A stretch of 64,000 bases of DNA from Marsupella aquatica (GCA_973895155.1 OZ316899.1:15589974-15653973), one strand, 5' to 3'; positions 8,693 through 31,546 are shown, numbered from the stretch's first letter. Notes: generated by a model not told the origin, from the letters alone. Numbers and translations: made by a program.

Positions 8693-11261
8693 AAGATTGA
8701 ATGATGAAAGTGTTATGCATGATCAAGAGATTCCTTTGAGAGAATGATGAGATTGAGTGAGTCAATTTGAGTAAGGAGACAAAGAAAACAAATCTAGGTT
8801 ACTGGGATGCCACCTTCCATTGGGAATTGAACAAGAATTGAAAAGTTAAGCTGGTCAATCACTGATCGCAAGGTGGAAGTTGAAAAATCAAGTGAGACTG
8901 ATTGCTCTGAGGCAAGTAATCTGAGAGTCAGTCAGAGTAAGAGAATTGTGGAATTGTTGTGCAAATTTGCCCAAGGCAATTTAAACAACAAGCAATGAAA
9001 TGTTAAGTTGGTCAATCGTTGGCCGCATGAATGTATGTGAATGAACTCACTCCTAATGAGTACTTTGAGGCAAATGCCTTGAGAATCTAACAAGACAAGC
9101 AACTCATGAGGAGAGGACTCTGGTTGAAGTTTGTGTGTTTTGAACATGACATCTTGGTCATAATACACCTCCACCATAACAGGGCAATCGTTGAATTGAC
9201 ATTCCTATTGCGGATATCAGTTCACAGTCTACTCTACTACATGAAAAAAGTTTGATCACCAATTGGTAGATAGATGAGGCAATTGGGCCTAATTCTCTAT
9301 TGGGACAATTTTTGAAGGATAATGTTGAAAATAGGAAGAAAATAGGAGCTCTACTCAGTCCTCCTTTCAATATGCTCACAAGTGCGGATGAGCAACTGGG
9401 AGAGCCCCACTCCCCCTTATGCCCTTGAACTTGCCTCAACCGTCCCAACAACATTACTCCTAATCACATCACCAGTGTATTGACAGGGGTTTGCTCTTGA
9501 TGATGGTTCACTTCCAATGATGATCGGGCCAAAGCCGTAGCTCCCCTCATGCTTGATAGTGACTACCACTACATAAGGGTCATTGTAAGCATGCGAGGAA
9601 ACAGTAAAAAAAATCCTTGCACGAGCAATTTTTTCTCATATGACCCCTAATTTTTCTATATCCAACTTACTTGTTAACAACAGCCTGGTTGATAACATAC
9701 ATTTTTCTGACTCCTCTTTTTGCTAGCAAACTAGCTACTGGAGTAGCCATATGGAGTCATAAAAAAACACAAATATATAAAAAGTAGAAAACGCAAAAGA
9801 AATTTAAAATCACTTGTGTCTGGCTAACAAAATTCCTGTTTGCTCGCATTATACAATATCTCACTACATAGCTCTATAATCATGATGTGCTTCAAGTGTT
9901 TTGCTTACATTTTTGCACTCCTAATGCATTAACCGAGGTATTCTATGTTGCGAGCAAACAAGAGTTTTGCTAGCGAGGCAAACAGGCTAGCAAGGCAACT
10001 TTCTAGGTACCTTTAGGGTAGATGAGGCGGATTCCCAAGTAAGATTGTGGATAAATTTATTGTGAAACAGTTATGAGTAAGGGAAATGCAGATACTTGAA
10101 TATCCACAACCCGGAAACTTGAGATCTTCACAACACTGAACTGAATGACAAGGCATCATCAATGTCAACAAAACCAGTTCTGAAAACCTTTCACAATCCA
10201 CCTTTAATAGAACTTTGTAATGACAAATATGTTTGCGAATGAGATTGCATCTAAAATTGACCATTAGTCATTGAGAATCCTTTGATTCCAAATCATCTGC
10301 CCGATCATTTGAGGCATTACTAGGATTGCTACTCGACTCCCTATCAGTCTCCTCAGCTAAATTGTCAACATACTGGGCTACAGTACCATCATCTATGAAC
10401 TGAGGGCAGTAAAGGGCTTTTCGAGCACCCCTCACTGACCGCACACCTTTCCCCTCCCAAGCCAAAACGACGGGTGCTTCATCAACCTCCTTTGCAGACT
10501 TTTCGGCATAGTAAGGAAGCGCAAATCCCTTCTCAGGGGTCACAAGAAAATGATGCTCAATTTCTTTTTGAAGACGGAATATCTCCTCCAAAAACCAATC
10601 CGAACGCCTATCACTGAAGAAATCACTAGCATCGGATCAATACTACGATCCAAAAATTCTACAAATAATAGAAAAACACCGAATACGGAGTTTTGCATCA
10701 AAGGCCAAGTACTTTACTCCAGGTCAAATTCATCCTTCTTGTCTGAAGGTCCTCCCTGATCATCTCCTGGGATGGTGAACTCATCCTCCGATCCTTCATC
10801 ATTGGGGTCCTCTTTCTTTGGATCTGCAGCCCCTTTCAACTTCTAGGCATGTCTATCCAACACATTTGCCAGATTTTATTGAGCACACGAATGAAGTATG
10901 TCTCGATCTTCAACACCCACAACAAATCTCCCTGCGTATTCCCCAGCGGCAAAAGCACTTCCATCGCCAATAGTCCAATCAATGACAATGTCTTTTGGCA
11001 AAGTAAGGATCTCCATTACGGCTTGCATGAACCCAACTGACAATCTATTGGAACCTGCGAAAGCCGCCCTGGGACTGGGATCAGTTTTTGGGTAGCAAAC
11101 ATTCAACATCGATTTATGACGGGCATCCTTAGAAGAAGTCAATGGAACATATCCAGTATGTTTTGGGACTTTTGCTGAGAATTCCACCTTGCAGAAGACA
11201 TCCATAATGAGAGTAACTACCTGAATTGAAAACAAGAATTTGTCATAAATGGGTACTTTTG

Positions 11262-11279
11262 GTTAGCGAGCTTGCTAGC
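11262..11279. promoter_or_regulatory. 18-bp palindrome GTTAGCGA-GC-TTGCTAGC in intron
   Basis: Variant of the consensus GYTAGCGA-NN-TCGCTARC, inside intron 11221-11324. Function is inferred only. Confidence 0.6.
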
Positions 11280-13459
11280 AAAAATTGCACAAAAAATATT
11301 GAGGAATTTAATAGAATATCTTACCTCTATGTCCATATTTGTTTGATACAAAGGAGATGAAAGCAAAATTGAATACTGTCGGACATGTTTGAATTTGTTC
11401 TTCTGCTCAACGACAATTTTTTGTGTCTCATATGGTTATAGTCAAAGTTGTGAAGAACTGCAACATAACCATCATTGACAAGCATTGGACGCATGACTCC
11501 AAAGAAATAATATGGTAATTTCTCACTCCAAACATTCCACTTCGGGACCTCCCGGTCTGTGATACTCATTCTATGACCCGTGGGAAGGAAAATGAAACCC
11601 AAGTGAGCACCAATCCCAGAGTACGGTTTGCCGTTGATTATCATTGGATTTGGGTGTTCGCTCAATTTGCTCATTGCAGACAACCACTGATCTGCATCGC
11701 CCATCCAAGGAGGTCTTACTTTCCTCTGGCTAATTGGGTTTGCAATTTTAGTGAGATTGCTTTTTGCCAAGAAATGTCTATCACCGCCCTTCTTAAGACC
11801 ACACATTTGTGCTACTCCTTGAGCGATGCATGCTTCCTCCTCATTCGAGTCGAAGAGAATTTGCACATTGCGCTTCCTCTTTAAACGCTTGATTGAACCA
11901 AGGTCTACAACAAATTTTGTTGTGACCTCAACATCAGGAGACTTGGGTTCTTCTCCATCATTGGCCCCACTCTTCAAACTCCCGGAGGCTGCTGCCTTTC
12001 TCTTCTTTGAAAAACATGTTCATGTCAAACAGGTCACTCAGACAAAATTACTCTGAGTGCAGTATGAAAATAAGAGGAGAAAAGAACTTACTTTGCTTGC
12101 CAGACAAGATTGAACCATCTTTAGACAAGTCCTTCACCGGCACCTTCCAAGGTCTCCTCGATCAACTCCGGTCAACAATGGGAGCCACACCAATAATAGC
12201 TTTCTCCATTGCCTCACATCCGCCAGCCTCTGCTTTTGCAGGAGCTAATTTGGACTCCGTAATGTAAGACTCTAGTATCAAGTCTTGATTTATCATATGA
12301 AAGGCTGCCTTCTCTGCAGTGTCAAATGTCACTGCCCATTTGTCTGATGCCATGGACAGTGAAGGATTTCCCACTCACTCATCTTCCTTGGAGCCTCCAC
12401 TCCCTCACATGGGTACATCGAGTACTCTCTGTATTTAACAGAGGTTGGATCCTCTTTCACCCCTGCTATCCAAGGCAAGAAGCAAGCAGGATAGGACCAC
12501 CAATATGTTTTGTCAGCAACTTATCTATCCACAAAAAAACAATACGTATATCTCTTCGCCCTCCTCCAAAAAAGTGAGATGTCAATCTTCTCACCCGACT
12601 TTGGTGGCCAAATCTGTTTGAAAAAATGAGTTTTCACTCTTGTTTGGAAATCTTCAAAGTCCTCCTCTATGTCAAGGATCAGCAATGGCTTTGTCTTCTC
12701 AGACAAAGTAAGGATCCTCGCATCTGGAACAGTTGGGATCAAATCTGAAATAATCTTAGACATGAGTGAAGAACAAATTGACTCGACCTGCTCCCATACA
12801 GCCCATCGGTGAAGCCAAAGTTTTGTTTTGGTGTCAGAGAATTGACCGGGTGGAAGAAATTCTTGCAAAGCTCAAGTCTGCATTGTGCTTCAAGGAGTAC
12901 ACATCTCAGCTGGGGTGTCAATGAAGAGACACCAGTAAATAGTCTCGCACGATCGAGACCACACGACACATTCCCGCTTCCTTTGTCGTCTATTTGTTGG
13001 GCCTCCTTCCTCTCATGTTCGTAGTAGTTGTGCATCTCAACACACTTCTGGAAAAAGTCACCAAACTCAGGAGTCAGAAGAGGTCCAATCTTTGGCACCT
13101 TCACATTCCAATCTGCTAGTTGTTCCTTCATCATGTCTCTCATAGCCATGTCTTGCGCAACTTTAGAAAACGGTTCTCCTTGCGCTTCTTTCAATTGGAA
13201 CTTCTTCTTCAAATCTTTAGTCTGCGCTGCAATATTAGCAACAGACAAAATGTACATGCAGGCATCGAGTGTCATGTTCTTCGAATACCAAGCCGGTTTC
13301 CTGATATTTGCCATCTTTTGCTGGAAAAGTTTGTAGTTGTCTCCATCAATGATCTTTGTGTACAGAAAGATCATTGTTGAGCACCTTATGGACTCGCTCA
13401 GCTTCAAGCACCCAAGAATTCTCAACGTGACATTCAGTCAACCTGAACCAAAGAAACAG

Positions 13460-13477
13460 GTTAGCGAGATCGCTAAC
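13460..13477. promoter_or_regulatory. 18-bp palindrome GTTAGCGA-GA-TCGCTAAC in intron
   Basis: Perfect 8-bp arms with a 2-bp spacer, inside intron 13443-13534. Confidence 0.65.
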
Positions 13478-14631
13478 AAGAGGAATTGAAAGAATGTTTT
13501 TTTCAATTCACTGCTTGAAGGAATAGAAACAAACCTATTCAACGCATGCATGGCCGACTCAATCTGCACGAATGAGTTCTTGTCATCCTTGAAAATTTGG
13601 CAAACAACTCAAGGATGGTACTTGACATCATGTGGATTCTCGTCCGCAAGTTGCATCCACGAGTAGAGACGATGATTTCCATCAAAAACATAGAACATTT
13701 TGTCTTTCAAAATTTTGAAAGCCTTGTGAGAATCACATTCCCTCTCGAATTTGTCAATCTGAAGAATCCATGTGTCATCCCACGACTCCCTAATCACATC
13801 GTCGCACATCTAGACATGGCCCTGTTTGTCCATCATTTGGACATAAATTGAGGTGCATCCTCAATGTATCCCTTGTCCAGAATTCATTCTTGAGGGTCTC
13901 AATTGCAGTCGAGTTTGTCTGCAAGGACCAAACAATCTACATATTTTGCATTCTGCAAAGCGGAATCCTTGGAGGAGCGAGGGGGAATCCAAATTCATCA
14001 GCTCCAAAAGGGAAAAGATGGCGATTGATGACAACAGAATAGGGTTTTGAAGCGCCAGGTTGAAACGTAGGATTCACAACATCCACTTGGTTCACCATCT
14101 TTGGTCTCTTTGGTGTTTTCAATCTCGCCTTGAGCGCCTTCTTGTTTGCAGTAGACCTTGTCTCCCTTCGGCTTGACTCGACTGACTTGAACAATCCTAT
14201 TGATGACAAGCTCTTGGGTGAAGACAATGGCTCCATCAGCGGGCCAGTAACATGATAAGGGTATGAACAGGTCAAGGATGAGGGCAACACGCTTTGAGAA
14301 CGTAAAGAAACCCGAGAAACCCGAGAATCAATCATCCAGTCAAGGACAGAATTGTACCCGCCTTTGTTGCTTTCACCTGAATGCAATGCCCGGTCGCAAA
14401 AAGAGATGCAGATATTCTGTACGATGCTCTTCACAATCATTTTTTAGACACCGTCAGGGATACATGTACTTCCAAAAATATGATCAACCAAACTCACAAT
14501 TGAAGCAAAAGTATCGAATAACATAGAGACAAAAGTCCTTTACTCCACCGTACCGTTGACATCAAGGTACCCGTTGACCAATTCCAATAAATATAAATGG
14601 TCATAATGGTCACATATGAGAAACTATTTTT

Positions 14632-14649
14632 GCTAGCGACATCGCTAGC
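14632..14649. promoter_or_regulatory. 18-bp palindrome GCTAGCGA-CA-TCGCTAGC
   Basis: Perfect 8-bp arms, located between the two divergent genes. Confidence 0.65.
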
Positions 14650-14726
14650 CAAAAAATGGTTCTTAATTTGACCAAGTCAGAGAGGGTGTTTTATATGTTT
14701 TGAAAGCATTTTATGTGGTTGATTGA

Positions 14727-14744
14727 GCTAGCGATCTCGCTAGC
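14727..14744. promoter_or_regulatory. 18-bp palindrome GCTAGCGA-TC-TCGCTAGC
   Basis: Perfect 8-bp arms, 95 bp downstream of the previous copy. Confidence 0.65.
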
Positions 14745-15509
14745 TTTAACATTCCATATATAGTTCCATATAAGACAAAACAATGGTCAAGTAACGGGAA
14801 GATGGGTCATTTATTAAATAAATACGTTGAGTCAAACACCTACATGAGAACGTTTTCTCATATGTATATGGAGAAATAGGAGTGCGACGTATCTCACAAG
14901 TGAGGAGTGTTGTAGACTGTCATGTCCAAAACTATCAACATGTCTTCTCTAGGATCCAAGGTTGTAATCGAGAGAAAGAAGACCGGTGATGTTGTTGTTC
15001 TAGGTGTTCCAAAGAATAATGTTATCTTTGTCAAGGAGTCTTTCCTGTTATTGAGGTTTGGGCTTTTGGGCTTTTATCTGGAAGTTGTTCCTTCTTTATT
15101 CTAGGAATGGGTCTGGAAATCATGAGGTGCCGGATAATGGTTCAAGAATATTGTGACGCCGCCGGTACGGTGAATAATGAGTAATTCGGTCTAAACCGCG
15201 CTTAGCACGTGCGTTAGGGGTATCTTAGGCCACTATTATTAGCATAACGATAGTATTTAGGTAGCCATTATGAGTAGGAAATCATTAGTCAATAAGGGGA
15301 ATTCATGTTTGGACTGGCGGCGTGTCGCCATTTGCACGCCCGGGTTGCGAGCGTGGAGGGCCCCCCCCTCGGGTCCGTATAACAAACTTAGGGAAGTGGC
15401 CACTGACACGCGCTGACTCAAACCGGCGGAGTGGCCGGTACACTACAAGCGTGAACGGTTCAGCCTATAAGCAACGAGGAGACGTAGGGTGATTGACGAG
15501 CCCTCAAGG

Positions 15510-15518
15510 TATAAAAGG
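15510..15518 (+). promoter_or_regulatory. TATA box of the element-internal ORF
   Basis: TATAAAAGG ~100 bp upstream of ATG 15617. It is conserved in copy 2 (ccttTATAcc on the plus strand near 31172-31180). Confidence 0.55.
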
Positions 15519-15616
15519 GAGCCGACCCTTTGTAGTGCACCAGTCCATCAGTCCACGCGCCAGCTTTGACCCCAGCCCTCTCGTTCTCTCTTAGTCGCCA
15601 CTGCTATCTCCTCTGA

Positions 15617-18144
15617 ATGTCGCACACGATCCTCTCCAGTTCGGCCATTCGATTCTGGACGCAGTTCCTATCTACCGGAAGACACTTGGCCGACTCATTG
15701 AAACACGCCAACCCGTGCCGATATGAAATTGAACGCGAGTACAAGAGAGCCATCCGCCTAGCAGGACGACACCACTATATCCTTAACTTTGACTACCCAT
15801 CTTAGAGCGAGCTTTACCGACCAGCAGAGGTATCTGGGTACTTCTTCAACGGAGACAAATATATCGGTTTCTGGGAAGCATTGCTTTGGCTTTCGGATGA
15901 GGTCTTCAATATCCCGGGTACGATCGACTTGCAACGGCATCACTTCGACCACATCCCTGCTCAGGTTCAGGCTATCATCAACAGCGAGTCCAGCACTACC
16001 CGTTTGACAAGGCCGTCTGCACTTGCTTCGGAGAACTTCTACCAGCACCTGCAGAGCTTCATGGGAACTAGACCCTCAACCGCTGGCGCCGACCCAGTCG
16101 ACCCCATACCCGTACCCGCACCAATGCAAACTCGGGCTCAGCTTCAGTCTCAGCCTCAGCCTAGCCAACCCACAACGCCGATCGCCCCGCCAGTACAAGT
16201 ACGCTCCGTCATCAATATTGTGGACCTTAGCGACGACGACGAGGCTACCCCACCCTTGCTCAGGCGGCCCAGAGGAGCGAACACTCAGGGGGCCGACACT
16301 ACATTGTCCCCTCCCCATGTCCGGATCCAAGGAGCGGCTCCAGCAGACAACACGGTGACCGTGGCCGCCCCGGGCCCAATACTAACGGCGGTAGCACTAC
16401 CTATGCCCAATCGAGAGGATGGGGAGGTGTCACCCTCCCCGAGCCAGTCACGAGGGAAGAAGAGGAAGGAAACCGCTGCTGCATCCGGGTTACCAATGGC
16501 CACGGTAGCCGCGGCCAAGGTGACAATGCACCGCATGGGGGAAAACGTGCATAAAAACATCCTCCATCCCAAACATGTGGTGTACCTGAAAACTCAGGGA
16601 TTTGAGCACCTCGCCTCTCTCCCCTGGAACACTTGCAGGTACTACGGGGAGGACATGACGGAATTTGTCAAGAATTATGACGATGCATGTCAACATAATC
16701 GGCTGCAGGGAAGGAATATGTCCCTCACGGAAGAACGGCTCAAGATGATCTTCGGGTTACCCGAAGGTGACCACCAAGTTGAATCACGGGCTCCCGGGGG
16801 CAAGGGAGCCAAGTATCAATCCTTGAGTTTTCCCTCCAAGGGATCAGTGGACAACGGGTTCGTGATGAGGACCTGCCTCATCCCCAAGATAGTTGAGCGA
16901 CTAGAGTTCCAAAGGTACGCCCTACACATGATGGAACCCCGGGGGGAGATCTCCGTTGCCCAGGTTATCCAGGTCGAGAACTATCGACCTAGGAAGTGGG
17001 CATCGTACTTCGCTAAGAAATTCCATGAAGAGATGGAGCGGCGAAGAAAGACGCTATACATTGGCGGGAAGGCGTATTTCGCTAGCCACATCGAGATCAT
17101 TCTCGAGTGGTACACTCGGTTTGATCGACGAACCCTTCCCCGTGTCAACGTAACAAAGCTGGTCCCAGCTAGGTGGGTTTTCCCGGCCTTGGAGAGACGG
17201 CCCCAACACGAGGCCCGAAGTCCAGCGGCCACGCAGGCTTCACCCACCCCACCTCCACAAGTAGCTGTAGCCGTGGCCAAGGAGGTATCGGATGGGTCGG
17301 TAATCGCAACCGTAGATGCGATCAACCAGGCCGGGCAAGTACAAAAGTTGGGACAGCGAAGGCCTTACTCAAGCCCGGGTCTCCCAAAGACCCACCGGTG
17401 GCTATTCCGGAGGACCGAACATTGCTGCAGGAGGATACTCCAACCCCTTCCAACACTACGTCCCCAGGGCTGGATGTCACTGCCCCAGCCCCCGCGCGTG
17501 TTGACGTATGCCCGTGCCCAACTCCGGACAGGCACAACCTGGACCACCCGAAACTCTTCGTACCGGGTACATTTCTGAACGGGCTTATGGGAGATTTCTC
17601 TCATCAAATTTCCCGGGATACCGGGGAGTTCATGGCCCGAAAGGTAGACTATTTCTTCAATCAGGAGTTGGTTGACGCAGTAAAGGCAGGTCGGGCCTAG
17701 TCAGAGGCCCTTCAGAGGATAGAGCGGTACCGGGTGGAGTCTGTATACTTAAAGAATGAAGTTGCGGCTCAAGAGGCTGAGCTTCTACAACTACGACCCA
17801 AAGTTGCAGCCGCCGATGAGTTGTTAGCGAAGGCGCATGCCCTTACCGCCCTAGCCGAACAGGCCAAAGCTGGGAACGAGGCCGAGATTGCATGACTCCG
17901 GAACCAGATTGACAGTTTGAAGAATCAAACTATCATCTGGCAGAAAGACCTGGAGGAGGCCAAAGAACGGGCCCAGCGGGACACTGCGGAGATAGCCACG
18001 CTACAAGCCGAAGTGGCGCGGCTCCAAACCGAAGCTGAGAAGCAGGACCAGTTGGCGGGCAAGCTGACAAGCGACCCCCAGCAACTGGAGGAGGCATGCC
18101 AGGAGGCAGCAGAGGAAATGGACGGGGCGGCCCTTAGTATTTAG
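15617..18144 (+). pseudogene. ~850-aa protein: N-terminal domain, Pro-rich linker, PMD/transposon-like domain, coiled coil
   Basis: ORFs 15617 and 15881 are in the same frame across a TAG (CAG in copy 2). One frameshift at ~17350 and stops at 17698 and ~17893. Core motif GFEHLASLPWN..EFVKNYD..LTEERLKMIFGLPEG..WASYFAKKFHEEM. Confidence 0.8.
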
Positions 18145-19362
18145 GTCACCCCTCGGTAGAGGCAGGGGGATTTTTTTAGTCTCGGTATTGGACATCCGCG
18201 GTATGTGCGAGGAGTCCCGACCTCTGGGAGTGAAAGAGTACCAAGGGGAGGGTGTAAGACTAAGCTTGCTGGGCGAGTGCGGAGCCGGGCTCCGTTGTAG
18301 TGTACACCCTCGGCCTCGGACCTTTTCAATCCAGAGCATTCGGGTCAACTAAGTGTACGCGTATGTCTCTTATGGAGTAAAATCCCTTCCCGTTATTTCC
18401 TTCGTGTAAATCGAGATTTTATGCTTGTGCGTATGTATGTGTGTGAATCTCGTGTATAGGTGCCAACGCTTGGCCGAACGGACTACCCAAGTAGTGCACG
18501 GGGTGCAGCTTGCGTGTACATGGTTGCGAGCCCGGGTTGAGCACCCATATCATCAAAATCCGGATGGAAGGCGGACAATACGAAGGCTTAGAAGCCCTTA
18601 AGCCAGGGTCGATCCTGCTATCGATTGAGGTACGTTCCGGCGGCGGAACACAAATCATACCTAGGAGGTGTTCGTATATGATGATAGGCACACTTAGCGC
18701 TATTTTACGTAAGTTGGGTGCATTCCGTGCCTCCCTCCCCTGCCCGAACCCTCATTTTGACAAAGGAGGTGCCTGTTTAAGCCAAAGCCCGGAGTAAGGA
18801 CAAGGCTGACGACGTGACAAATATTGCCAGAGAGAGTTTGGGACCTGAAGTGTGGTTCAGTTGTAGAGATAGTCTCATGTAAGGATGACATTGCATATAT
18901 CAATGTTTTAGATCTAGACTCGCTAACTCCGCCGACGTTACCTGTACCCAAAATTATCAACATCTCCCCTAAGAATGTTGGTTGGGATCTCTTTTTTGTA
19001 TCCACAAAGTCTTCTGAAAAAGCCCTTTTTGAAGTTGTGAGTCATAACGAGTTTCAATCTCAGCCAGTTCTACATAGAGTAAGTGCATATGATGCCTTCC
19101 TCAATATTACTGGGTCAAGCAAGTTGGCAAATTTCCATAGGGGAAACGATTGGAAGGAGATTCAAGTGCAGACTTTGCCCACTTCATACAATGGGAACTG
19201 CGTTTTTGAGCTTCCTCTAGTCGAAGGTCAATTTTGTCAAGGATATGGTCTTCAGGACATGGATAGGGATAATGATGGCTACCCTTGGAGAGGCTTGTCA
19301 CAACTTCAGCTAATCTGAAACCCCGCAACCACTGGTTTGTGTCAAAAGTAAGATGTGCGGGT

Positions 19363-19837
19363 TGTCATGACCATACGTAGCGTGCTAGACTATGTAGTGT
19401 GCTAGCGGAGTCCATACCTTAGATGGGCCGTAGTGCCTAGTTAGGAGTCTGGTTCCATGGTAGAGGGTTAGAGGGGGTGCCCTGTTGAGGGTGACTCCTC
19501 TAGTAGGACCCGCCCTCAGGGTTGGAGGGTATAGTGTGGAGAGGCTCAAAGGACGGTTAGTTCTTTGAGTTGAGCCTTTGGCGTTGGGAGAGCCTTGGTA
19601 GTGATTGGAGCTCCTTGGCTATGGTGTCCCGTTAGCTTTGACCTAGATTCTCCATTGCGGAGTGGGTTTGGCTTGACTGTGTGTGTTCTTACGTGTTTTA
19701 TGACAGTATGTCTTTCACGGATTTCAGTTGCGGTACACTGTCTTGTATTTGTGTATGCTCTTGTCCATGTTATGCATGTGTGTGAGTATGGCATGACCAG
19801 CGATGTATGTTGTATGACGATGTGGATTTGCATGACA
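19363..19837. mobile_element. 475-bp LTR (TGTCATG...CATGACA) without matching TSD
   Basis: Perfect 7-bp terminal inverted repeat. The flanks CGGGT and CCCCT differ. It interrupts the transposase-like ORF exactly. Confidence 0.7.
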
Positions 19838-21403: not shown

Positions 21404-22519
21404 TCAGACAATCAATTTCCTAAATAGGCTCACAACAATTCTTCTCCTAGCGGAATCCATGTCCTGAGCCGTGAAATAAAAAACCATGTCTAAACTACGG
21501 TACTCAGCAAATTTCATGACAAATACGCCACAATTGTAGCTGTCGGATTGGCAAGGAATGTCCTTGCGTGCGTGCCTGGGCCACTCACGAGCCCAAAGGT
21601 GCTTCTGATTTTTGGTTCTCAATTCGTCGTCCATGTATTTTGCCAGGTTTTTCAGAACATCCGGCTCTTCACCATGAAGGGAATCCAGATACTCTAGGCA
21701 TTTCTCGTTCTTGTCAATGACGACCAATGCCCAATGGCTTCCGCCGTTGACGTGAATAGGGACAAAAATACAATCACAATCAAGCAAGAAATACGTCAAT
21801 TTTGAGGTCCATGACTCCACCGCCGCATAATTATAACCATTCTTTGTGAGTACCGAGTAGAACCAGGTATCAAAGAAATGGCACTTGAAGACTCTCATCC
21901 CTGATCTGTCTTCCATCGCTTTGATGAGACCAAAATACGCGTTCATAACCTCGGAAGTTATCCATTCTCCTAGAGAGAGGCATCTCATTTCTTTCCGGGT
22001 TATGACGCAACCATTAGCGGTGCTGACTAAAACTGCATCTTCATCCAAGTCAGGGCTCAGGCAGAAGTATATGATGCCGTCGTCGTCCACCTGGTCCGAT
22101 GGAGGGTTTTCTTTTGGTGACTCATTGACAGTAGTAATGGATTTAGTTTTTTGGACCCGGGCGCCTCTTTGAATCGTAGGCTCAACGATAGTGCTATCTG
22201 ATACTCCTCCTGGATGATGAACATGAGCTGCGACAACGGACTCTTGACCCCAAACTGGGGTGCTATTATTATTATCATTGGAAAGACAATAACGTGGACG
22301 ATCGATATCGCGGATGATCGATACTTGCGAGTCTCTTAACAAGGACTGTCCGGATAATAGCCCAGCCAACACTACTGCCCCGTCAAACGACTGAGGCACG
22401 GGGCGGTCATGACCGGCTTGCACTGCACACGAGAGCAAAGGCAGAACTGCTGCCAAACTCCCCCGCACGTCTGTGTCTCCTTGGGGGTATAGCGACGGAG
22501 ACAGGAAACAGGTAAACAA
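21404..22519 (-). CDS. Ulp1/SENP-type SUMO protease (peptidase C48), transposon-associated; true start or splice site uncertain
   Basis: WITSEVMNAYF, HFFDTWFY, IFVPIHVNGGSHWALVVID, YLDSL, QSDSYNCGVF. The His-Asp-Gln-Cys catalytic residues are intact in an open 371-codon frame. Confidence 0.9.
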   Translation of the reverse strand: MFTCFLSPSLYPQGDTDVRGSLAAVLPLLSCAVQAGHDRPVPQSFDGAVVLAGLLSGQSLLRDSQVSIIRDIDRPRYCLSNDNNNSTPVWGQESVVAAHVHHPGGVSDSTIVEPTIQRGARVQKTKSITTVNESPKENPPSDQVDDDGIIYFCLSPDLDEDAVLVSTANGCVITRKEMRCLSLGEWITSEVMNAYFGLIKAMEDRSGMRVFKCHFFDTWFYSVLTKNGYNYAAVESWTSKLTYFLLDCDCIFVPIHVNGGSHWALVVIDKNEKCLEYLDSLHGEEPDVLKNLAKYMDDELRTKNQKHLWAREWPRHARKDIPCQSDSYNCGVFVMKFAEYRSLDMVFYFTAQDMDSARRRIVVSLFRKLIV

Positions 22520-22810
22520 GAATTTTTTTTCCTGTTTTTAATATGCTGTTACCAGGAAAAAATCACTGTTACCAGGAAAAATGACAATTTAAAAATGTCT
22601 CCTAAAACATGTTATTTCCAAAAAAAATTAACAATGCAACATTTTTGGCTAGCTTTCGGCGCTAGCAAAAAAAACTGGTCGACCAAAAATAATAATAATA
22701 AATTCTCAACAAAAAAATTTGAAAAAATTCAAAAAAAATTTCCACTCATTTTCCTGTTACCAGTTTTTTTTCCTGTTACCAGTTTCTGTTATTAAATCAT
22801 GTTTCCTGTT
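22500..22810. repeat. Cluster of CTGTTACCAG / TTTCCTGTT motifs and one GCTAGC-N7-GCTAGC palindrome
   Basis: CTGTTACCAG at 22546, 22566, 22754 and 22773. GCTAGCTTTCGGCGCTAGC at 22648-22666. Confidence 0.75.
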
Positions 22811-25800
22811 TGCTGTCTTTTGTAAACACCTCCTCCTTGGAGACCCTTGTCCACAGCGCTGTCCATTCGCATACTCGCAGATAGTGACCACTGGCTGCCC
22901 TGGCATTCAGATCTTGTGTGGAGCAGCCCGGTGGTCTCCACAATGACTTTGCAAAGCTCGACACCTTGTCGAGAGACTTCATGTTCTCAGCATACGCCGT
23001 GAGGTCCATGACGTCCTCCCTGGCGGAGCAAAATTAGAAGCACTTGCGTTCCAAGAGTAGTGCATGCTTCAGAACCTGCCCCCCTATAAAGAAATCGAGC
23101 ACTATTTCCTCTTTTTTCAAGAAAGCTTCTATTATAGCTCGGATTATTCGCCCGGGCTTGATATTGGTAGTGAAGGAGCGGCCGCTGGGCGATCTGAACG
23201 GAACCCAATTTTCCAGCCTAACTTTCATCGCCGCTTGTTTGATGCTAGCCATCTCCCCATTGGGACGGTCCGTCGATTGTTCCTTGCTTGCCTTGCGGAG
23301 CTCCACTCGGTCTCCGTCTTCGAAGCTGAAATGGCCGGTGAAATTCTTGAAATGCGCTTCCCAATCCGGTTTCCTGTCTTGGGAAACACCGAGAAAAATC
23401 ACAGTTTCCACCACACCTCTCATGTGCTGCCGCGGGAGAAGCTCAAAGGCATTCTTGAAATAGGTGCCATATTCAAGATGGGCATTATAGTTATCGGGGA
23501 GACATCGCGCCGCCTCAATGATCCATGCTAGAAGTATTCCCGGATGCACAAAAAAGATGACCTTCAATGACTCGTTGGCCGGAACATTGACGACAATTTT
23601 CAGAAAATTCAATATTTTTGATTGTGTCCACGTATTGCCCCGGTGTGTGTCAAGTCCACGATCGCAAGAGATGCCACAATACTCTCACTACAGCTAGAGC
23701 AATCGAACGCTGGCTCGGCCAAAGCGAGAAAATTTCCAGTGTAGAAAATTCTGTAGGGATCCATCCTCAACCGAATATGTCCACCAAACTTCTTCAGATA
23801 CAGATTTTGTAGCCTATTTTTCAAAGCCTCCGACATGTCGGCCCTCTCGAACACCTTCACCAGGCTCCTAAAATATCCGGCATCGACCAATGCGCAACAA
23901 TGATCAAGTTCGTCATTCGTAAAATCAAACGTCCGAATGATGTCCGCCCAGAGAGCACCGGCCGAAAACAATTGGTCATAGTTTGCACGATAGAATCGCA
24001 GGATTGCGCATTTCAGTTTGTCCATATACTTTGCCTTTGCTGCCAGGTCGGACATGGTCGGCATATCAGTTAAAGCGTGTTTCTTTCTAATCAACAACGC
24101 ATCACCCGAAAGGACTTTCATTAAGATGTCGGTGATGTCGGATTCCCGCGTGCCCTCGAACACTTGGAACGTACTTCCGTTTAACCTCTTCGCTTCCTTT
24201 GGTTTGTAAGTAACCTCTCCAATGTTGTCGGGGAAATGTCCTTTCAACCAACTGTTGCAAACCGCTCTCCACAATTTGTACAGGTCTTCCGAGGTGAATA
24301 GGATCCAGTTGTACTCGTTGATGGTACTCATTTGCAGCGTGAGTTTTGCAAGCGCCTCGTACTCCTGATCATTATCAATCATAAATATGTGAATCAAAGA
24401 ATTACACACGTTGCGTACACTACATACCCTGCATACCCGTTCACTAAAACACTTAAAAATGTAGTCATGATTTTCTTCCCACCCATCATATAAATAAACA
24501 CAAATCCTCCATATACTACCTAGAATTCGGTGGACTTTCGCCCAGAAGGAAGTGGACGAGCTGGACGATCCATTTCGCTGTACTGCAACCGGGCGTGCTC
24601 CACCTGATCAATGAATGGAGACAAAAACCTGTGTGCTTCGGATTGCATGTTGTTTGCATGGGAAATCTCCACCAGAACTTGGGCAGGGGTCGAACCCTTC
24701 AGGATTTGAGCCCGTCGATATTTCAGTAACTTGGCGGTTTGCATCAACGCCGGTTGGGTTTGCGCACTCCTAATTATCCTCTTTGTAGCCATTGCTGAGT
24801 GTTGTCCACTGATTGCAAAATATTTAAATTTGGACAACTTTTCGGAATCAGAATCAGAAACAGATAGGTCGATGAGTTTGTAAGCCCCGTCGATGCCAAT
24901 GCTGTAGGCAACCAGATCTACAGGTAGTGGCTCTTGACCACTAATCATGAGTAATCATGAGTTTGACGAGGTGATTGACATGATCATCATTCAATAAACA
25001 CTCGTTCATCTTGGTTGGGGGAGTGTGGATATTGTCCACTGGAACCGTGCAAAGCGTAGATAGTCCAAAGGAATACCAACACTTGTACAACTGCAAAGTC
25101 CTCTCTGCATTTTCGAGACGAGAACGATCAACCAACAATATTGAACTATCATCCACATTCAGCTCGATGGTGTTGATCGACACCCTTTTCTTCTTCTCGA
25201 CCCTGCTCATGTCCCCTTCCTCTGTCTTTGTTTTCGCTCCACATGCTTGTTCAATGTTCTCCCCTTTGCTTCTTTTCCCCGTTTTTTTGGCATCGCCTGA
25301 GGTTCCTGTTTTCCCGATGCCTCCCCTTTTTGTGCTTCCTTTCCTTCTTCCCTGGTTGTTGCTGCTGCTCTCTCTCTCGTGATGACCTTTCTTTCGGCTG
25401 CTTTCTAGACGTCTCATTCTCCGGCCCGGTCTTTGTTTGGGGTTCCTTGTCTTCGCTCCTTTCAACTTGCTGCCTCTCTCACGTGCTTGGCACCGTCAAT
25501 TGTTTATCGTCCCTATTTCTCTTTTTGCGATTTTTGAACTGATCCGACCGTAATACCACTTCAAGCATTTCTTGCGGCACACTGCATGTACCTTCCACAC
25601 CCTCATTACCCCCAAATCTGCCTGAATGAGATGGATGACAAGGTTCCAGCTTCCTCGTTTTTGGCCCTGATTCGGACAAATGTCTAGCTTGATGAAGAAC
25701 TGGATGCTTACGGATCCAAGTTTTTACATAATCGCGATTGAATTTGTTTGTGAAAATTACAGCTTTGTCGATAGTTATCCTCTCGCGAAGCTCATCGTCA

Positions 25801-26078
25801 CCTATGGTACGCGCCATGATGTGTGCCACCTCTCTAGTTTGGGACAAGAAAAGTCCATGCCTGTGATTCAATAAGAAGTTTACCCTTCCAAGCCTGTACA
25901 GTATATAATCACAACATATGTCACGATCTTCATCCATGAACGACTCACAAGTGGGATCAAAGAATCCGTGCGATGTGATGTTCATCCAGACATCGTAGGG
26001 TTCAAGGCAATGTGCACAGCAGAATCTTCCAGCAAGTGCGACAAATTGCTTGAAACTCAAACCTTCAAGATCCTCCAC
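22797..26078 (-). pseudogene. Second, divergent ParB-like + N4/N6 methyltransferase-like fusion gene
   Basis: ORFs 25479, 24941, 24520, 23609, 23034 and 22797 chain together. ParB-like KYFAISGQHSAMA..LVEISHANN; phase-0 GT-AG intron 24365-24519; MTase-like IKPGRIIRAIIEAFLKKEEIVLDFFIGGQVLKHALLLERKCF. A 10-bp duplication at 24942-24961 causes one frameshift. Confidence 0.7.
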
Positions 26079-27603
26079 CGTTATGATGAGCTGCCTCTCT
26101 CATGGCCGCCACTTAGGATCGGCAGTTACATAGCAGTCCGCGACAACACCAAAAGTGACCCAACATTTCTGCTCCTTCTTGGTTGCTATGCCTTGAAGGA
26201 CACACTACCACACGCCTGTCACTTGCATCAATTCAAAAGACCACGATGGAACCGATTTAGAGATACGGGCATATCCCTTCACTTTAGGTGTCTGTAGCGA
26301 TAGATGGCTCAAATTGCAGAGAAGCGATTCAACTCCTACGATTGAGCAACAAGCGAAGTATTTACATTTTAGCACCACAAGAACTTGGACGAAGGCGTTT
26401 TGACAAGCCATCTAGAAACATTGATGACTCTAAAGGATAGCAGAGATGCAAACAAATGCAAAATGAGCCATTTCAAACACTAAATCCTAAAGCCATTCTT
26501 GTTGCCGATGATTGCCACAATGAAATACAGTGTGCAAATATGACATAGACAACCCTAATGGGTGAGAGCTGCCTCGGCGGAACGGAAGAAAGGCTGACAA
26601 CCCTAAAACATCGCGCGTTGTATATCTTCTCATTTGCATCGCCGCCCATGGTTCTCTACAAAAGAAGTCGCATATCCTACCAGAGAGTCGCGTAGGGTAA
26701 ATGACAGATGGGGGTTTTAAGACCCTACCTTCCAATTGGATGAAAGCTTTGGTTGCCAATGCCAGAGCATCCAACGCTGGTAGAGTTGTTGTCATTCATT
26801 CACGTGATCTCCCTATTCACTGGCAAGGGTGCAGAGAGAGCACAGACACGGGCGACGGCACCACGGTAGGGAGCAAGCCACAGGAAATCCACCAAAGGAT
26901 GCTGTTTAAGTAGTGTTGTTTCTTACTGTAGGGGTGGGCAAACCGTAAAGTGTGGCCGACGGTTAGGTCTTTTGTGCAGCAGAGGCTAGGATGCTCCTGA
27001 TGACTGCTACCAGACTAGCAATCCACAACCCTGCAGGCTCCATCCATCTTGGATCGCCATCGTACTCTCAATGCCCTCTTAATGCCGAGCCTTGCTTCCC
27101 ATCTGCTTCACGTATGATCTCTCATGAATGACGGCCGAGGATAAGTTACTCCTCAGGTGCCGCCTCCCAATTTTCAAGATCCAAGTACCATCAGTACTGT
27201 TCAAGGCTCCTACTACTGTCCCTGTCACTACCTAAAGCAGCGAGCCCAAAGTAAGTACCACGAAGCGGCAAGTAACTCAGCATGAAAATCCAAGGCACGA
27301 GCCATCAACAGGGCATCAGCCATCATCATTAATTTCAAGGTTTAAGAGCCTGGGGGATCTCATTGTTCGCTCATGTCTGATTAAGAACCTCATGGATCTC
27401 ATTGACAGCCATCTGAAGTTGATGTGCCTTCTCCAAGTGGTCACCATTTTTTAAAACATAGAATACCTTCTTATAACGTGCTATAAAAAAGAAGTAACCC
27501 AATAAACAGAAAGACATAACACCAAAAGTGGACAGAACATAGCCTAAACCCTATGGGACTGTAATATGAATGATAAGCTCCCCCCCACATATCTTACACC
27601 ACT

Positions 27604-30600
27604 TGTCACGCCGTCAGCCTAGGCCTTAACCCGGGCTTCGGCTTAGACAGGCACATCCTTTGTTAAAATGAGGGTTTGGGCAGGGAGAGAGCCACAGAAT
27701 GCACCTAGCTCACATAAACTAGCACTAAGTGCGCCTATTGTCATATACGGACACCTCGTAGGTATGGTTTGTGTTCCGCCACCGGAATGTACCTCAATCG
27801 ATAGCAAGATCGACCCCGGCTTACGGGCTTCTAAGCCTTTGTGTTGTCCACCTTTGATCCGGATTTGATGGTATGGGTACTCAACCCGGGCTCGCAACCA
27901 CTCACCCGCAAGCTGCACCCCGTGCACGACTTGCGTAGTGCGTTCGGCCAAGCGTTGGCACCTATACACGAGATTCACACATATACATACGCACAAGCAT
28001 ACAATCTACATAGGAGACATATGCGTACACTTAGTTGACCCGAAAGCTCTGGAATGAACAGGTTTGAGGCTAAGGGTGTACACTACAACGGAGCCTGGCT
28101 GCGCACTTGCCCAACGAGCTTAGTCCTACACCCTCCCCTTGGTACTCTTTCACTCCCAGAGGTCGGGACTCCCCGCACATACCGCGGATGTCCAACACTG
28201 AGACTAAAAATCCCCCCCCCCTTGCCTCTACCGAGGGGTGCACTAAATACTAAGGGCTGAGGAACGGAGTGCCCTCGCGCCCAAAGTTTCGCTAACTAAC
28301 GTCCTAACCAAGCTGGTTGTCAGGCCGGAAAATGGCTTGTCTTATTAGAAGATCCTAATCTACGCAGGTTGTACAGCATGGCAGTGCTGCTTTAACTAAG
28401 GCAGGTGCTTGTCCCTGTAGCCTAATTTAACTACTCCTACTCTATTTTAATTGTACTCTACCGCTAATGCCTGGCACGCTTGCCAAAGCCGCTTGAGTGG
28501 GAGCGGCTATCCCGCTGCCTTCTGAGCCTGTCGGCGTCCTGCTTGAGTAGCTGGACCTGGTCCAGCATAGATTCATTCTCCCACTTTGCCGCGTCTGCCT
28601 CTTCCGCGGCCTCCTGGCATGCCTCTTCCAGTTGCTGGGTGTCGCTCGTCAGCTTATCCACCAACTGGGCCTGTTTCGTGACTTCTCCTTGAAGCCGCGC
28701 CACCTCTACCTTCAGGGTGTCAATCTCGGCTGTGTCCCACTAAGACCTGGAGTCAGCTTCCTCCAGATCCTTTTGCCAACTGACGGCTTGCCCCTGCAAA
28801 CCATCAATCTTGGTCCGGAGCCGCGCAATCTTGGCGTCCTTTCCGAGCCCGGCCTGTACTGCTAACGCTGCTTGGGCCCTAGCCTCGGCAACCTGGTCCT
28901 CCGTGGCCGTTACCTGAGGCCGTAGTTGCTGGAGTTCAGCCTCCAGGGTTGCCACTTCGTCCTTCAGGTAGGCAGACTCAAACCGATATCGCTCTATTCT
29001 CTGCGCTGTCTCTGCCTGCGCATGTCCTCCCCTTACTGCCGCAACCAACTCCTGGTTGAAGAAGTAGGCCACCATCTGGGCCATGTATTCCCTGGTGTCC
29101 CGAGAGATCTGTTGCAAGAAATCTCCCAACAACCCGTTCAGAAATGTGCCCAGCGCAAAGAGTTCCGGGTGGTCTAGACTGTGTCCCTCTGGATTCGAGC
29201 ACGGGCAGACTCCAACCCGTGCGGGAGTAGGAGTGGACACATCCAGCCCTTGAGGTAAGTTGGTCGAAGGGGCTGGTTCCACTGGAGGTGGGAGGTTCTC
29301 CTGCACCACCGCGGGGGGTGGCGGAATACCCTCGGCTATCGTGGCATTTGCTTCGGGTGCGGCTTCATCCGGCCCGGCTTCGATTGCATTGTCCCAATTG
29401 ATCGCATCTAAGGTCGCGATAATGTCAATGGGTATGCCTGGTGGGGTGGCAGCGGCTGGTTACGGGGCCGGGGTAGTAGGACTTGCAGCCACCAGACTTT
29501 GGGCCTCGGGCTGCGGTCGCCTCACCTGGGCTGGGAACACCCATTTTGGCGAGGTCAGCTCGGGCTCGTTGAGACGCGGGAGGCTCCGGCGGTCAAAACG
29601 AGCGTACCACTCGATGATGATTTTGATGTGGCTAGCAAAGTACGCCCTTCCGCCAAGGTACAAAGTCTTCCTTCTCCGCTCCATGTCCTCATGGAACTTC
29701 TTGACGAAGAAGGACGCCCACTTCCTGGGCCAATAATCCTCTTCCTGCATGACCTGAGCGGCCGATATTTCTCCTCTGGGTTCCATCATGTGGAGGGCAT
29801 ACCGCTGGAACTCCGGGCATTTTGCTACCTCCAGGATGAGGCACGTCCTTATTAAGAACCCATTGTCCACTACCCCCTCGGCCGGGAAGCTAGATGACTG
29901 GTATTTAGCTCCCTTGCCCCCAGGAGCCCACGATTCTACCCGGTTTATCCCCTCGGGTAAACCAAAAATCATCTTCAGACGTGCCTCATTGAGACACATC
30001 ACTCTCCCGTGCGCTCGGGTTTGTTGATGGGCCTCGTCGAAGTTCTGAATGAACTCCGTCATATCTTGCCCGTAGTACCTGCTTCCGTTCCAAGGGAGAG
30101 AGGCGAGGTGCTCAAACCCTTGGGTCTTTAGATAGCATGCATGCTTGGGGTGGAGGATGTTCTTGTGAACGTTGTCCCCCATGCGATGCATGGTCAGCTT
30201 GGCTACCGCAACCGTGGCCCAAGGCAACCCAGATACGGTTGCGGGCTCCTTCCTCTTCCTACCCCGAGACTGATTCCCGGGGTGACTAGAAGAGGGGGAC
30301 ATCTCTCCATCCTCTTGGTCGGGTGGTGGTAGCGCGACTGCCGTGAGTATTGGTGCCAAAGCCGCTAGAGTTACCGTGTTATCCTCTCGGGCTTGCTGGA
30401 GTGGTGTTGGGTTGTTTGGCGCTTGTTGAGTCGTACCCCGCGGCCGTCAATTCAAAGGAGGGTGAGCCTCCTCGTCTTTGGAGCTAATATTTACCGCATT
30501 CACCACGGATCGTACTCGGAGAGGCGGTGGGACCGGTGGTGGGGACCGGCTCGGCTGAGGCCGAGGAGGTGTAGGCACGGGTACAGGCACGGGTTGGCCG

Positions 30601-31546
30601 GCACTGGTCGTTGATGGTAGAGTTGCCATGAAGTTCTGTAGGTGCCGATGGAGGTTCTCCAAAGCAAGTGAAGATGGCCCTGTCGACCGGGCAGTGTTGA
30701 ACTTGCTGTTGATGATAGCCCGGACCCGAGCGGGGATGTGGTCAAAGTGGTGCCGCTGCAAGTCGATTGTGCCCGGGATATTGAAGACCTTGTCCGGAAG
30801 CGGAAGCAATGCCTCCCAGAAGCTGATGTATTTGCCTCCATCGAAGAAGTACCCTGATACTTCTTCGGGTCGGTAAAGCTCGCTCTGGGACGAGTAATTA
30901 AAGTTAAGGAGATAGTGGTGTTGTCCTGCTAGGCGGATGGCTCTCTCATACTCGCGTTCAATCTCGTATCGGCGCGGGGTTGGCATGTTTCAATGAGTCG
31001 GCCAAGTGCCCTCCGATAGACAGGCACTGAGTCCAAAATCGTATGACCAAACTAGAAAGGATCGTGTGCAACATTCAGAGGAGATAGCAGGTGACTAAGG
31101 GAAAGCGAGAGAGCCGGGGTCAAAGCTGGCGCGTGGACTGAAGAACTGGTGCACTGCAAAGGATCGGCCCCCTTTATACCCTGAGAGCTTGCCGACCGCC
31201 TGACGCCTCCTCGTTGCTTATAGGCCGAGCCTTTCATGCTCGTAGTGTACCGGCCCCTTCGCCGGTCCGGGTCAGCTTGTGTTAGTGGCCGCCTCCTGGA
31301 GTTTGTTATACGGACCCGAGGGAGGGGGAAAGGGGGCCCATTACACGCTGGCAACCCGGGCGTGCGAATGGCGACCAGTCGCCAGCCCGAACATGAATTC
31401 CCCTTATTGACTAAGGATTTCCTAGTCATAATGGCTACCTAAATACTATCATTATGCTAATAATAACTGCCTAAGATACCCATAACGCATGTGCTAAGGG
31501 CGGTTAGACCGAATCACTCATTACCCGCCATACCGGCGGTGTCACA
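27604..31546 (-). mobile_element. 3943-bp TG...CA element (giant solo-LTR-like), 5-bp TSD CCACT, copy 2
   Basis: Plus strand reads TGTCACG...GGTGTCACA. CCACT lies at 27599-27603 and 31547-31551. Homologous end to end with 15152-18819, and retains ~330 bp (about 28260-28590) that copy 1 has lost. Confidence 0.92.
28464..31074 (-). pseudogene. Paralogue of the 15617-18144 PMD-like/coiled-coil protein
   Basis: ORFs 30447, 29460, 28740 and 28464 align with copy 1 (IDLQRHHFDHIP; KLTMHRMGDNVHKNILHPKH; GTFLNGLLGDF; QQLEEACQEAAEE). Confidence 0.8.

Follow-up and report, generated by a model that had tools for sequence, protein, structure and literature searches.

A candidate self-recognition system in a liverwort-type DNA transposon family: a methylase-like accessory gene and its palindromes

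Transposon-encoded factors that recognise their own element have, to our knowledge, been documented in detail mainly for the VANDALs of Arabidopsis. In VANDAL21, a Mutator-like element (MULE), the motifs of the accessory protein VANC21 lie in introns, in the DNA between genes and in non-coding terminal DNA, and they co-evolve with the element (PMC5735166). Here, we report on a stretch of 64,000 nucleotides (nt) from Marsupella aquatica (GCA_973895155.1 OZ316899.1:15589974-15653973), referred to throughout as the window, in which positions 9716-14744, together with a remnant at 19016-19398, make up a transposon copy that is dead and has been interrupted; it belongs to a family of DNA transposons of bryophytes (liverwort-type). 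In intact relatives two genes are arranged head-to-head, one encoding a transposase-like protein of ~700 amino acids (aa) and the other, with multiple exons, an accessory protein with a methylase-like domain, and a family of 18-bp palindromes accompanies these genes in the non-coding DNA of the element. The pairing of gene and palindrome, which the original prediction made from this sequence had singled out as the potentially new part, is real and appears undescribed in the literature searched, and it is the strongest result of the analysis.

By behaviour, the closest analogue of this family is VANDAL/VANC, while by ancestry it is the phage fusions of a ParB_N domain to an N6_N4 methylase. As in VANDAL21, a transposon accessory protein is accompanied by a dense, lineage-variable short motif confined to the element's own non-coding DNA (PMC5735166), and the comparison with VANDAL/VANC drawn in the original prediction is apt. 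The two systems nevertheless differ in that the accessory protein here carries a prokaryotic methylase fold, in that the motif is a palindrome of 18-24 bp, whereas that of VANC is 9 bp long, has an orientation and stands in tandem arrays, and in that binding and hypomethylation have been shown for VANC and are putative here. Pfam scans of all exons gave no family beyond weak methylase matches, and hence no VANC-type domain, although these scans involved no direct comparison with VANC sequences.

The phage and plasmid ParB_N-N6_N4 fusions, such as gp24 and gp25 of Acidithiobacillus phage AcaML1, share with the family an N-terminal G-x-H/G-R motif followed by a homologous beta-class methylase. 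However, the phage fusions keep a DPPY or SPPY tetrapeptide and a Pfam-significant ParB_N domain, whereas the eukaryotic family has LP(T/N)G, an inserted middle region of ~400 aa, introns and no detectable ParB_N homology. Bacterial ParB-parS systems are similar in having dyad-symmetric sites of ~16-18 bp, several copies of which lie near the gene of the putative cognate protein, but in the present family there is no supported ParB fold or helix-turn-helix (HTH) domain, and tens of sites are spread across the introns of a eukaryotic transposon.

Catalytically dead methyltransferase paralogues, exemplified by METTL14 and DNMT3L, serve as nucleic-acid-binding or scaffold subunits. The accessory protein resembles these in that the fold and part of the cofactor pocket are kept and the catalytic motif is degenerate, with the protein remaining under selection. 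METTL14 and DNMT3L, however, act with an active partner enzyme; we know of no active paralogue for the accessory family, and the other related gene in the window, a second one, is degenerate as well. Prokaryote-type amino-methylase folds have been described in other eukaryotes, including another liverwort: MpDN4MT1a/b of Marchantia keep a TSPPY catalytic motif and methylate DNA (bioRxiv 10.1101/2021.02.12.428880), and N4CMT of bdelloid rotifers is reported to deposit N4-methylcytosine (4mC) (PMC8885841). Compared by description, these are genes of the host rather than of a transposon with palindromes of its own. A survey of adenine methylases in eukaryotes from 2015 mentions ParB-linked clades in haptophytes, chlorophytes and chytrids and nothing like the accessory family (PMC4738411), and a literature search for the accessory family itself found no description.

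Palindromes in the element and across its relatives

In the window, the palindrome family takes the form GCTAGCGA-nn-TCGCTAGC, with a length of 18 bp. Four sites, beginning at 11262, 13460, 14632 and 14727, lie within two mismatches of GCTAGCGAnnTCGCTAGC in a search that allowed three, compared to an expectation of 0.08, and none of 100 shuffles reached four. Two degenerate sites bring the family to six, and all six sites are located in introns or flanking non-coding DNA (Table 1), confirming the restriction to the non-coding DNA of the element noted in the original prediction. One other related site occurs in the 64 kb, a lone palindrome, GCTAGCGCCGAAAGCTAGC, at 22648-22666. The sole perfect 18-bp palindrome in the window, at 13704-13721, was considered as a member of the family and rejected, being coding and unique.

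To find relatives of the accessory gene, an all-against-all HMMER search was run with its 216-aa exon, which returned 37 proteins only, mostly fragments; those matches among the 37 that are named are annotated as 'unnamed protein product' from the liverwort Calypogeia fissa. The whole gene is collinear between window positions 14161-10337 and two C. fissa loci (L001 and L002). The same exon set was found in two further C. fissa loci (L003 and L004), in a metagenome contig (L005) and in L018/L019, and parts of the gene are carried by L020 and L021. Taken together, collinearity extends to the four C. fissa loci and to five contigs from metagenomes or read assemblies. In L005 and L018 the exons are stop-free throughout. 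Because the four C. fissa copies are dispersed, lying on four different contigs, with the window copy in addition, the accessory gene belongs to a multi-copy mobile element, in agreement with its original description as transposon-borne. A search for terminal repeats indicated that the palindromes alone recur at both element ends, and in these copies, which are 67-80% identical, no other terminal repeat or target duplication of the element was definable.

Every related locus counted carries palindromes in number, from 6 to 23 copies per element, so that the co-occurrence of palindrome and gene proposed for the window extends to the other copies: there are 21 sites in L001, 11 in L002, 23 in L003, 15 in L004, 20 in L005, 14 in L018, 15 in L020 and 6 in L021. 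For L001-L004 and the window, 75 of the 76 sites lie outside cross-species-conserved coding sequence, which makes up 32-61% of the measured spans (binomial 6e-15). No palindromes were found in the ~110 kb of flanks of these same loci, and this absence led us to reject the idea of a genome-wide repeat. Clusters of sites occupy both ends of the element, the divergent promoter, the stretch separating the partner gene from a third open reading frame (ORF) and introns that correspond from copy to copy.

The sites have a dyad-symmetric core, CTARCGR-NN-YCGYTAG, of which the symmetric lineage variants are TAGCGA/TCGCTA, TAACGA/TCGTTA, TAACGG/CCGTTA and TAGCGG/CCGCTA. The consensus is ATTGYTAGCGAG/CTCGCTARCAAT in C. 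fissa, ATTACTAACGAY/RTCGTTAGTAAT in L005, TTGYTAACGG-nn-CCGTTARCAA in L018, AGGCTAACGG-nn-CCGTTAGCCT in L020, AGGCTAGCGG-CG-CCGCTAGCCT in L021 and TTTGGCTAGCGA-nn-TCGCTAGCAAA in the window. These six lineages present five distinct symmetric consensus variants, the window having the C. fissa core with differences in the flanks alone. Between lineages, both arms change together, and the central pair of bases is free to vary. Columns 7 and 22 of the site co-vary within C. fissa (C-G 32, T-A 22, T-G 8, C-A 4; Fisher 2e-7); both the C-G and the T-A type depend on position and are common to related copies, indicating that this co-variation is largely inherited. Judging from their distribution and their lineage variants, the palindromes form a cognate feature of the element's non-coding DNA and co-evolve with the element.

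Metagenomes were also scanned for pairs of palindromes spaced 55-85 nt from each other. This was uninformative on the association, as the 24 contigs returned all consist of 12-bp tandem repeats, (CCGCTAGCGRNN)n, without family genes. The (CCGCTAGCGRNN)n arrays of these JGI metagenome contigs (L022-L045) share the CTAGCG core with the palindrome and are accompanied by no related genes, and the likeness is probably coincidental.

The methylase-like accessory protein

The accessory gene is spliced, runs on the minus strand from ~14161 to ~10337 of the window, and encodes a DGNHR motif near the N-terminus and a beta-class N6/N4 methylase-like C-terminus; the splicing, the motif and the methylase-like C-terminus had been recognised in the original prediction. 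Each of its pieces, whether an exon or a stop-free stretch, was searched singly. In order, the encoded protein comprises an N-terminal domain with the DGNHR motif, a middle region (~400 aa in intact relatives), a DNA-methylase fold of the beta-class N6/N4 type and a tail that is conserved, and in intact relatives it would be roughly 1,000-1,300 aa long, as estimated from the summed exon lengths of a multi-exon gene. A Pfam scan of the pieces of the middle region gave no match and no known domain. Comparison of C. fissa copies gave dN/dS values (the ratio of nonsynonymous to synonymous divergence) of 0.08-0.16 in the N-terminal and middle regions and the methylase-like part and of 0.07 in the transposase-like partner, values that are rough given synonymous sites near saturation; on these estimates, the accessory protein was under purifying selection during the diversification of the family. 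One further contig, L046 (Logan SRR18067352), is 68-70% identical to the window exons, is ~270 bp shorter across the stretch containing the 12165-11965 intron of the window and contains no palindromes. It looks like a spliced transcript, and hints that a relative is expressed.

The methylase assignment was examined by comparing the family alignment with one built from five bona fide phage N6_N4 methylases, of which two carry ParB_N. The two profiles were matched by hhalign over 241 columns with a probability of 95.8% (E 6.7e-9), in the order motif IV then motif I that is characteristic of the beta class, and on the strength of this match and this order the assignment of a methylase fold holds. 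Single sequences produced repeated sub-threshold Pfam, PHROG and NCBIfam matches on one C-terminal segment to PF01555 or phage methylase families. For the window piece at 10882-11253, these reached E 0.033 with Pfam PF01555 and E 0.007 with NCBIfam PRK13699. The PF01555 gathering threshold (26.7 bits) was not reached by the second window gene (24.4), by P0015 (23.5) or by the window piece (14.6). Phage tblastn matches of the methylase-like domain were almost all methylases, and a PDB profile search with the methylase-like alignment returned empty or random matches.

In amino-methyltransferases, the first residue of the catalytic tetrapeptide and its aromatic residue hold the flipped base. The family does not have the catalytic (D/N/S)PP(Y/F/W) tetrapeptide. 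Instead, phage DPPY is aligned opposite LP(T/N)G, with G or S as the fourth residue, in 22 of the 22 rows covering the motif (LPTG in the window), and at the tetrapeptide position the first proline alone is nearly invariant. Leucine and glycine at the base-holding positions make synthesis of N6-methyladenine (6mA) or 4mC very unlikely, and we consider amino-methylation of DNA by the accessory protein, as the original prediction would have it, unlikely on this alignment; we therefore warn against annotating such genes as 4mC/6mA methylases. The loop that binds S-adenosylmethionine (SAM) is kept, D-W-T/S-x-G-E/D-G being aligned to phage DPFxGSG (VIDWTIGDGSAF in the window), and a conserved G-L/V-E-D is aligned to the acidic residue (E) that follows the SAM loop of the phage enzymes.

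In the N-terminal domain, the conserved order starts with IPLCRL and continues through a helix and a strand to an insert of ~45 residues relative to phage ParB_N and then MFxVxDGNHRL. DGNHRL is present in almost every member, with one C. fissa copy reading DDNHR and another DGNHC. The order of strand and helix followed by the motif resembles the order in ParB N-domains; GNHR is unlike the GERR patch of CTP (cytidine triphosphate)-binding ParB. Pfam scans of the domain gave no ParB_N (PF02195) match, and hhalign of its profile against ten phage ParB_N domains gave a probability of 1% (E 0.05), with a short local match falling in the ParB-like register of the DGNHR motif. DGQHR models matched two members weakly (E 0.05 and 0.2). 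PADLOC, PHROG and NCBIfam scans of the domain returned nothing below E 0.04, a PDB profile search with the N-terminal alignment was empty, tblastn of the domain against plasmids and phages returned noise only, and its AlphaFold2 model, with a predicted local distance difference test (pLDDT) score of 51, is too poor to trust. No HTH domain was found in the accessory protein. The fusion of ParB and methyltransferase in the original prediction is thus upheld by profile search on the side of the methyltransferase fold and not on the side of ParB, as no profile, fold or hidden Markov model test detects ParB_N. The ParB/Srx identity of the N-terminal domain, to which the motif alone points, is a lead and not a finding.

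The copy in the window and its surroundings

The eukaryotic, non-human character of the window is apparent from its spliceosomal introns, its plant-type CCCTAAA repeats and the relatives of its sequence in the liverwort C. fissa. The accessory gene it contains is clearly broken. When read against intact relatives, to which homology spans 14161 to 10337, it has four in-frame stops and five regions of frame change (Table 1), consistent with the earlier description of this copy as pseudogenised, and with this copy being a pseudogene, it is the family that is of interest.

Table 1. Positions in the window of the element's palindromes, of the pieces of the accessory gene and partner gene, and of the insertion between the two genes
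Feature	Position	Strand	Details
Degenerate palindrome, GCTAG-ttt-GCTAGC within TTTGCTAGCAAA	9716-9733		Near element 3' end; position as relatives' 3'-end clusters
Palindrome with widened spacer, GCTAGC-11 nt-GCTAGC	9969-9991		3' of accessory gene
Last exon, conserved C-terminal tail of accessory protein	10337-10621	-	tblastn to L018 and L005 exon 5; collinear with L001, L002
Exon, C-terminal half of methylase-like domain	10882-11253	-	SAM loop (motif I) 10951-10986; GVEDRD 10900-10917
18-bp palindrome, intron splitting methylase-like domain	11262-11279		Same-intron sites: L001 11275, L002 11585, L003 10469
Exon, N-terminal half of methylase-like domain	11310-11965	-	LPTG 11576-11587 in place of DPPY; frame change near 11430
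Middle region	12165-13441	-	Stop 12521-23; frame changes near 13400-13350, 12850, 12350
18-bp palindrome, intron after DGNHR exon	13460-13477		Same-intron sites: L001 8761, L002 9304, L003 7902, L004 8757
N-terminal domain exon(s)	13537-14161	-	IPLCRM 13949-13966; DGNHR 13669-13683; stops 13937-39, 13810-12, 13609-11; frame change near 13850
Exact 18-bp palindrome, 5' intergenic (promoter-side) DNA	14632-14649		Pattern search
Exact 18-bp palindrome, 5' intergenic DNA	14727-14744		Pattern search
Unrelated 3.7-kb insertion, separates accessory gene from partner	15150-18820	+	TG...CA ends, AATAT duplication; holds 565-aa ORF
Partner-gene remnant, residues ~115-240 of ~700	19016-19398	+	Head-to-head with accessory gene; homology to relatives' partner

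The ORF that had originally been taken for the head-to-head, transposase-like gene, 565 aa in length at 15881-17578, was rejected as a transposase: it lies within a discrete 3.7-kb unit (~15150-18820), gave no Pfam match and has no homologue outside the window. In addition to the copy with the AATAT target duplication, the unit is present in a second, inverted copy at 27603-31546, with the duplication AGTGG, and in a third, partial copy at 54759-55362, and the long ORF is 72% identical between copies. The TG...CA ends, the 5-bp duplications and the further copies indicate that the unit is an insertion. From its sequence features it resembles a solo long terminal repeat, although the long ORF is unusual for such. 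The real partner of the accessory gene is present only as a fragment, which lies ~200 bp past the insertion end and whose ORF opens four bases after the insertion.

In C. fissa, the head-to-head partner gene encodes ~700 aa, with an intact ORF of 726 aa at L003:3222-5402 on the minus strand, and relatives of the partner protein are P0045-P0049. The protein has a transposase-like appearance, with a region rich in cysteine and histidine and a D...D spacing around FMADNA recognisable by eye, the FMADNA...FH pattern being only suggestive. Its structural model is poor (pLDDT 53), and in a Foldseek search with this model the IS256-family ISCth4 transposase came third, with an E of 0.03 that is below significance. 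Pfam and PDB sequence/profile searches of the partner protein gave no MULE/IS256-type transposase match, and tblastn of it against plasmids and phages returned noise only. In P0046, the N-terminal ~90 residues (residues ~20-100) were modelled as a fold with moderate confidence, for which Foldseek returned ubiquitin-like/UBX matches with a probability of 0.96-1.0 for small-domain matches; the rest of this model is unreliable. Downstream of the transposase-like gene, a third conserved ORF of ~460-526 aa was also observed (L003:1483-3063 and L001:2495-3889, both on the minus strand). In C. fissa this ORF is parted from the transposase-like gene by a palindrome cluster and has no Pfam match. Like VANDALs, the family may therefore comprise three genes.

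Elsewhere in the window, at 23034-26078 with 21404-22519, both on the minus strand, lies a second gene that is very divergent but built along the same general lines. Its motif is SGQHS, at 24796-24810, and its C-terminus is methylase-like (PF01555, E 3e-5, 24.4 bits), and by eye IVDLTHTG, at 23639-23662, stands at the place expected for the catalytic motif. BLAST of this gene against the accessory gene detected no similarity. An Ulp1-protease ORF (PF02902, E 6e-36) comes after it, and between the two, at 22546-22821, five copies of CTGTTACCAGGAAAAA in both orientations surround the lone palindrome at 22648-22666. This array may be the own motif of a second element.

Several other repeats were observed in the window. 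Short interstitial CCCTAAA blocks of 2-3 units, the telomere repeat of plants, are located at 34498, 43419, 46557, 49348 and 49684, within 15 kb and followed by unrelated sequence, and a tandem array at 1191-1698 consists of about five units of ~100 bp that are 75-90% identical. Long inverted-repeat pairs with 74-82% identity are present at 3012-3765/32582-33292, 36102-37014/38249-39103 and 42224-42838/50149-51336, the first of which brackets the whole region studied; all three are probably other transposon copies.

Candidate readers of the palindromes

By analogy with VANDAL/VANC, a plausible interpretation, for and against which we see about equal weight, is that the family represents a self-recognition system of that kind built from a catalytically dead prokaryotic methylase. 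The palindromes would then be docking points for a dimeric, element-encoded protein, for which the accessory protein is favoured, the part of it that reads the palindrome being either the dead methylase domain or the middle region. Bound in this way, the accessory protein would label the element over its full length as 'self' DNA, in the manner of VANC on VANDAL21, in order either to oppose silencing or to promote transcription and transposition of the element itself, and such self-marking would proceed without DNA methylation and with no support for a CTP-driven sliding clamp. A more specific scenario, which we put forward only tentatively, is that a captured phage-type methylase lost catalysis and became a dimeric reader that coats its own promoter, introns and ends, and that protein and palindromes, co-evolving in every lineage, provide each with a private 'self' code, used against host silencing or for switching the element on.

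Several considerations weigh against such a self-recognition system. The accessory protein is no more than a candidate binder, domain scans identified no DNA-binding domain in it, and the cysteine/histidine-rich region seen by eye in the partner could be a DNA-binding finger, so that the partner could equally be the binder. Both AlphaFold models, that of the N-terminal domain (pLDDT 51) and that of the transposase-like protein (pLDDT 53), are poor, and the near-saturation of synonymous sites described above bears on the argument from selection. The window copy is itself non-functional, and the transposon contigs are too short to show whether sites persist without the gene.

The main rival explanation is that the transposase binds the palindromes, as with the subterminal or internal repeats of many DNA transposons, and that the accessory protein serves, for example, as a SAM-binding decoy or a host-chromatin interactor. 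This is possible, if doubtful. The clustering of sites at both element ends and between genes is consistent with it, and the cysteine/histidine-rich region of the partner may, by eye, be a zinc finger like those of Mutator-type transposases. Moreover, sequence-specific transcriptional activation is reported for the AtMu1 transposase in a 2026 preprint. However, the sites are found beyond the ends and fill the accessory gene's introns and the promoter region, a distribution nearer to that of VANC targets than to that of classical terminal sites.

It is also conceivable, though improbable, that the palindromes function as nucleic-acid structures (cruciforms of DNA, or hairpins within introns or the pre-mRNA) or else serve host transcription factors, and not a protein encoded by the element. 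The co-variation of arms within sites (Fisher 2e-7) and the intronic position of many sites would fit such a role, but the stems are at most 10-12 bp and have no spacer, sites also occur in the untranscribed-looking ends and in the promoter, and the co-variation is largely inherited, its types being positional and common to related copies. In addition, free central bases between fixed arms fit the recognition of two half-sites. Also improbable is the mechanism of the original prediction, in which an active ParB-type CTP clamp joined to an active amino-methyltransferase would load at the palindromes and slide from there, depositing 4mC or 6mA over the element; a role as hairpins alone is less probable still, given the short stems and the presence of sites in the promoter and at the ends. 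In favour of the clamp, DGNHR follows a conserved IPLCRL strand and helix, with a short hhalign local match in that register and weak DGQHR matches in two members (E 0.05 and 0.2), phage ParB_N-N6_N4 methylase fusions exist (AcaML1 gp24 and gp25), and the dyad symmetry of the sites is like that of parS. Against it, no member has kept the catalytic tetrapeptide, ParB_N goes undetected (hhalign probability 1%, E 0.05, with no support from Pfam, PHROG, NCBIfam, PADLOC, PDB or tblastn), no HTH domain was found, and GNHR does not match the GERR patch of CTP-binding ParB.

Returning to the VANDAL/VANC-like system that we favour, a prokaryotic methylase fold without its catalytic motif, still under purifying selection, is here paired with a palindrome whose arms change together. 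This points to a second, unrelated solution to self-recognition in an early-diverging plant lineage. The family would offer natural pairs of protein and site with which to follow the evolution of a self-recognition code, and may extend the role of dead methylases to that of sequence-specific DNA readers in eukaryotes.

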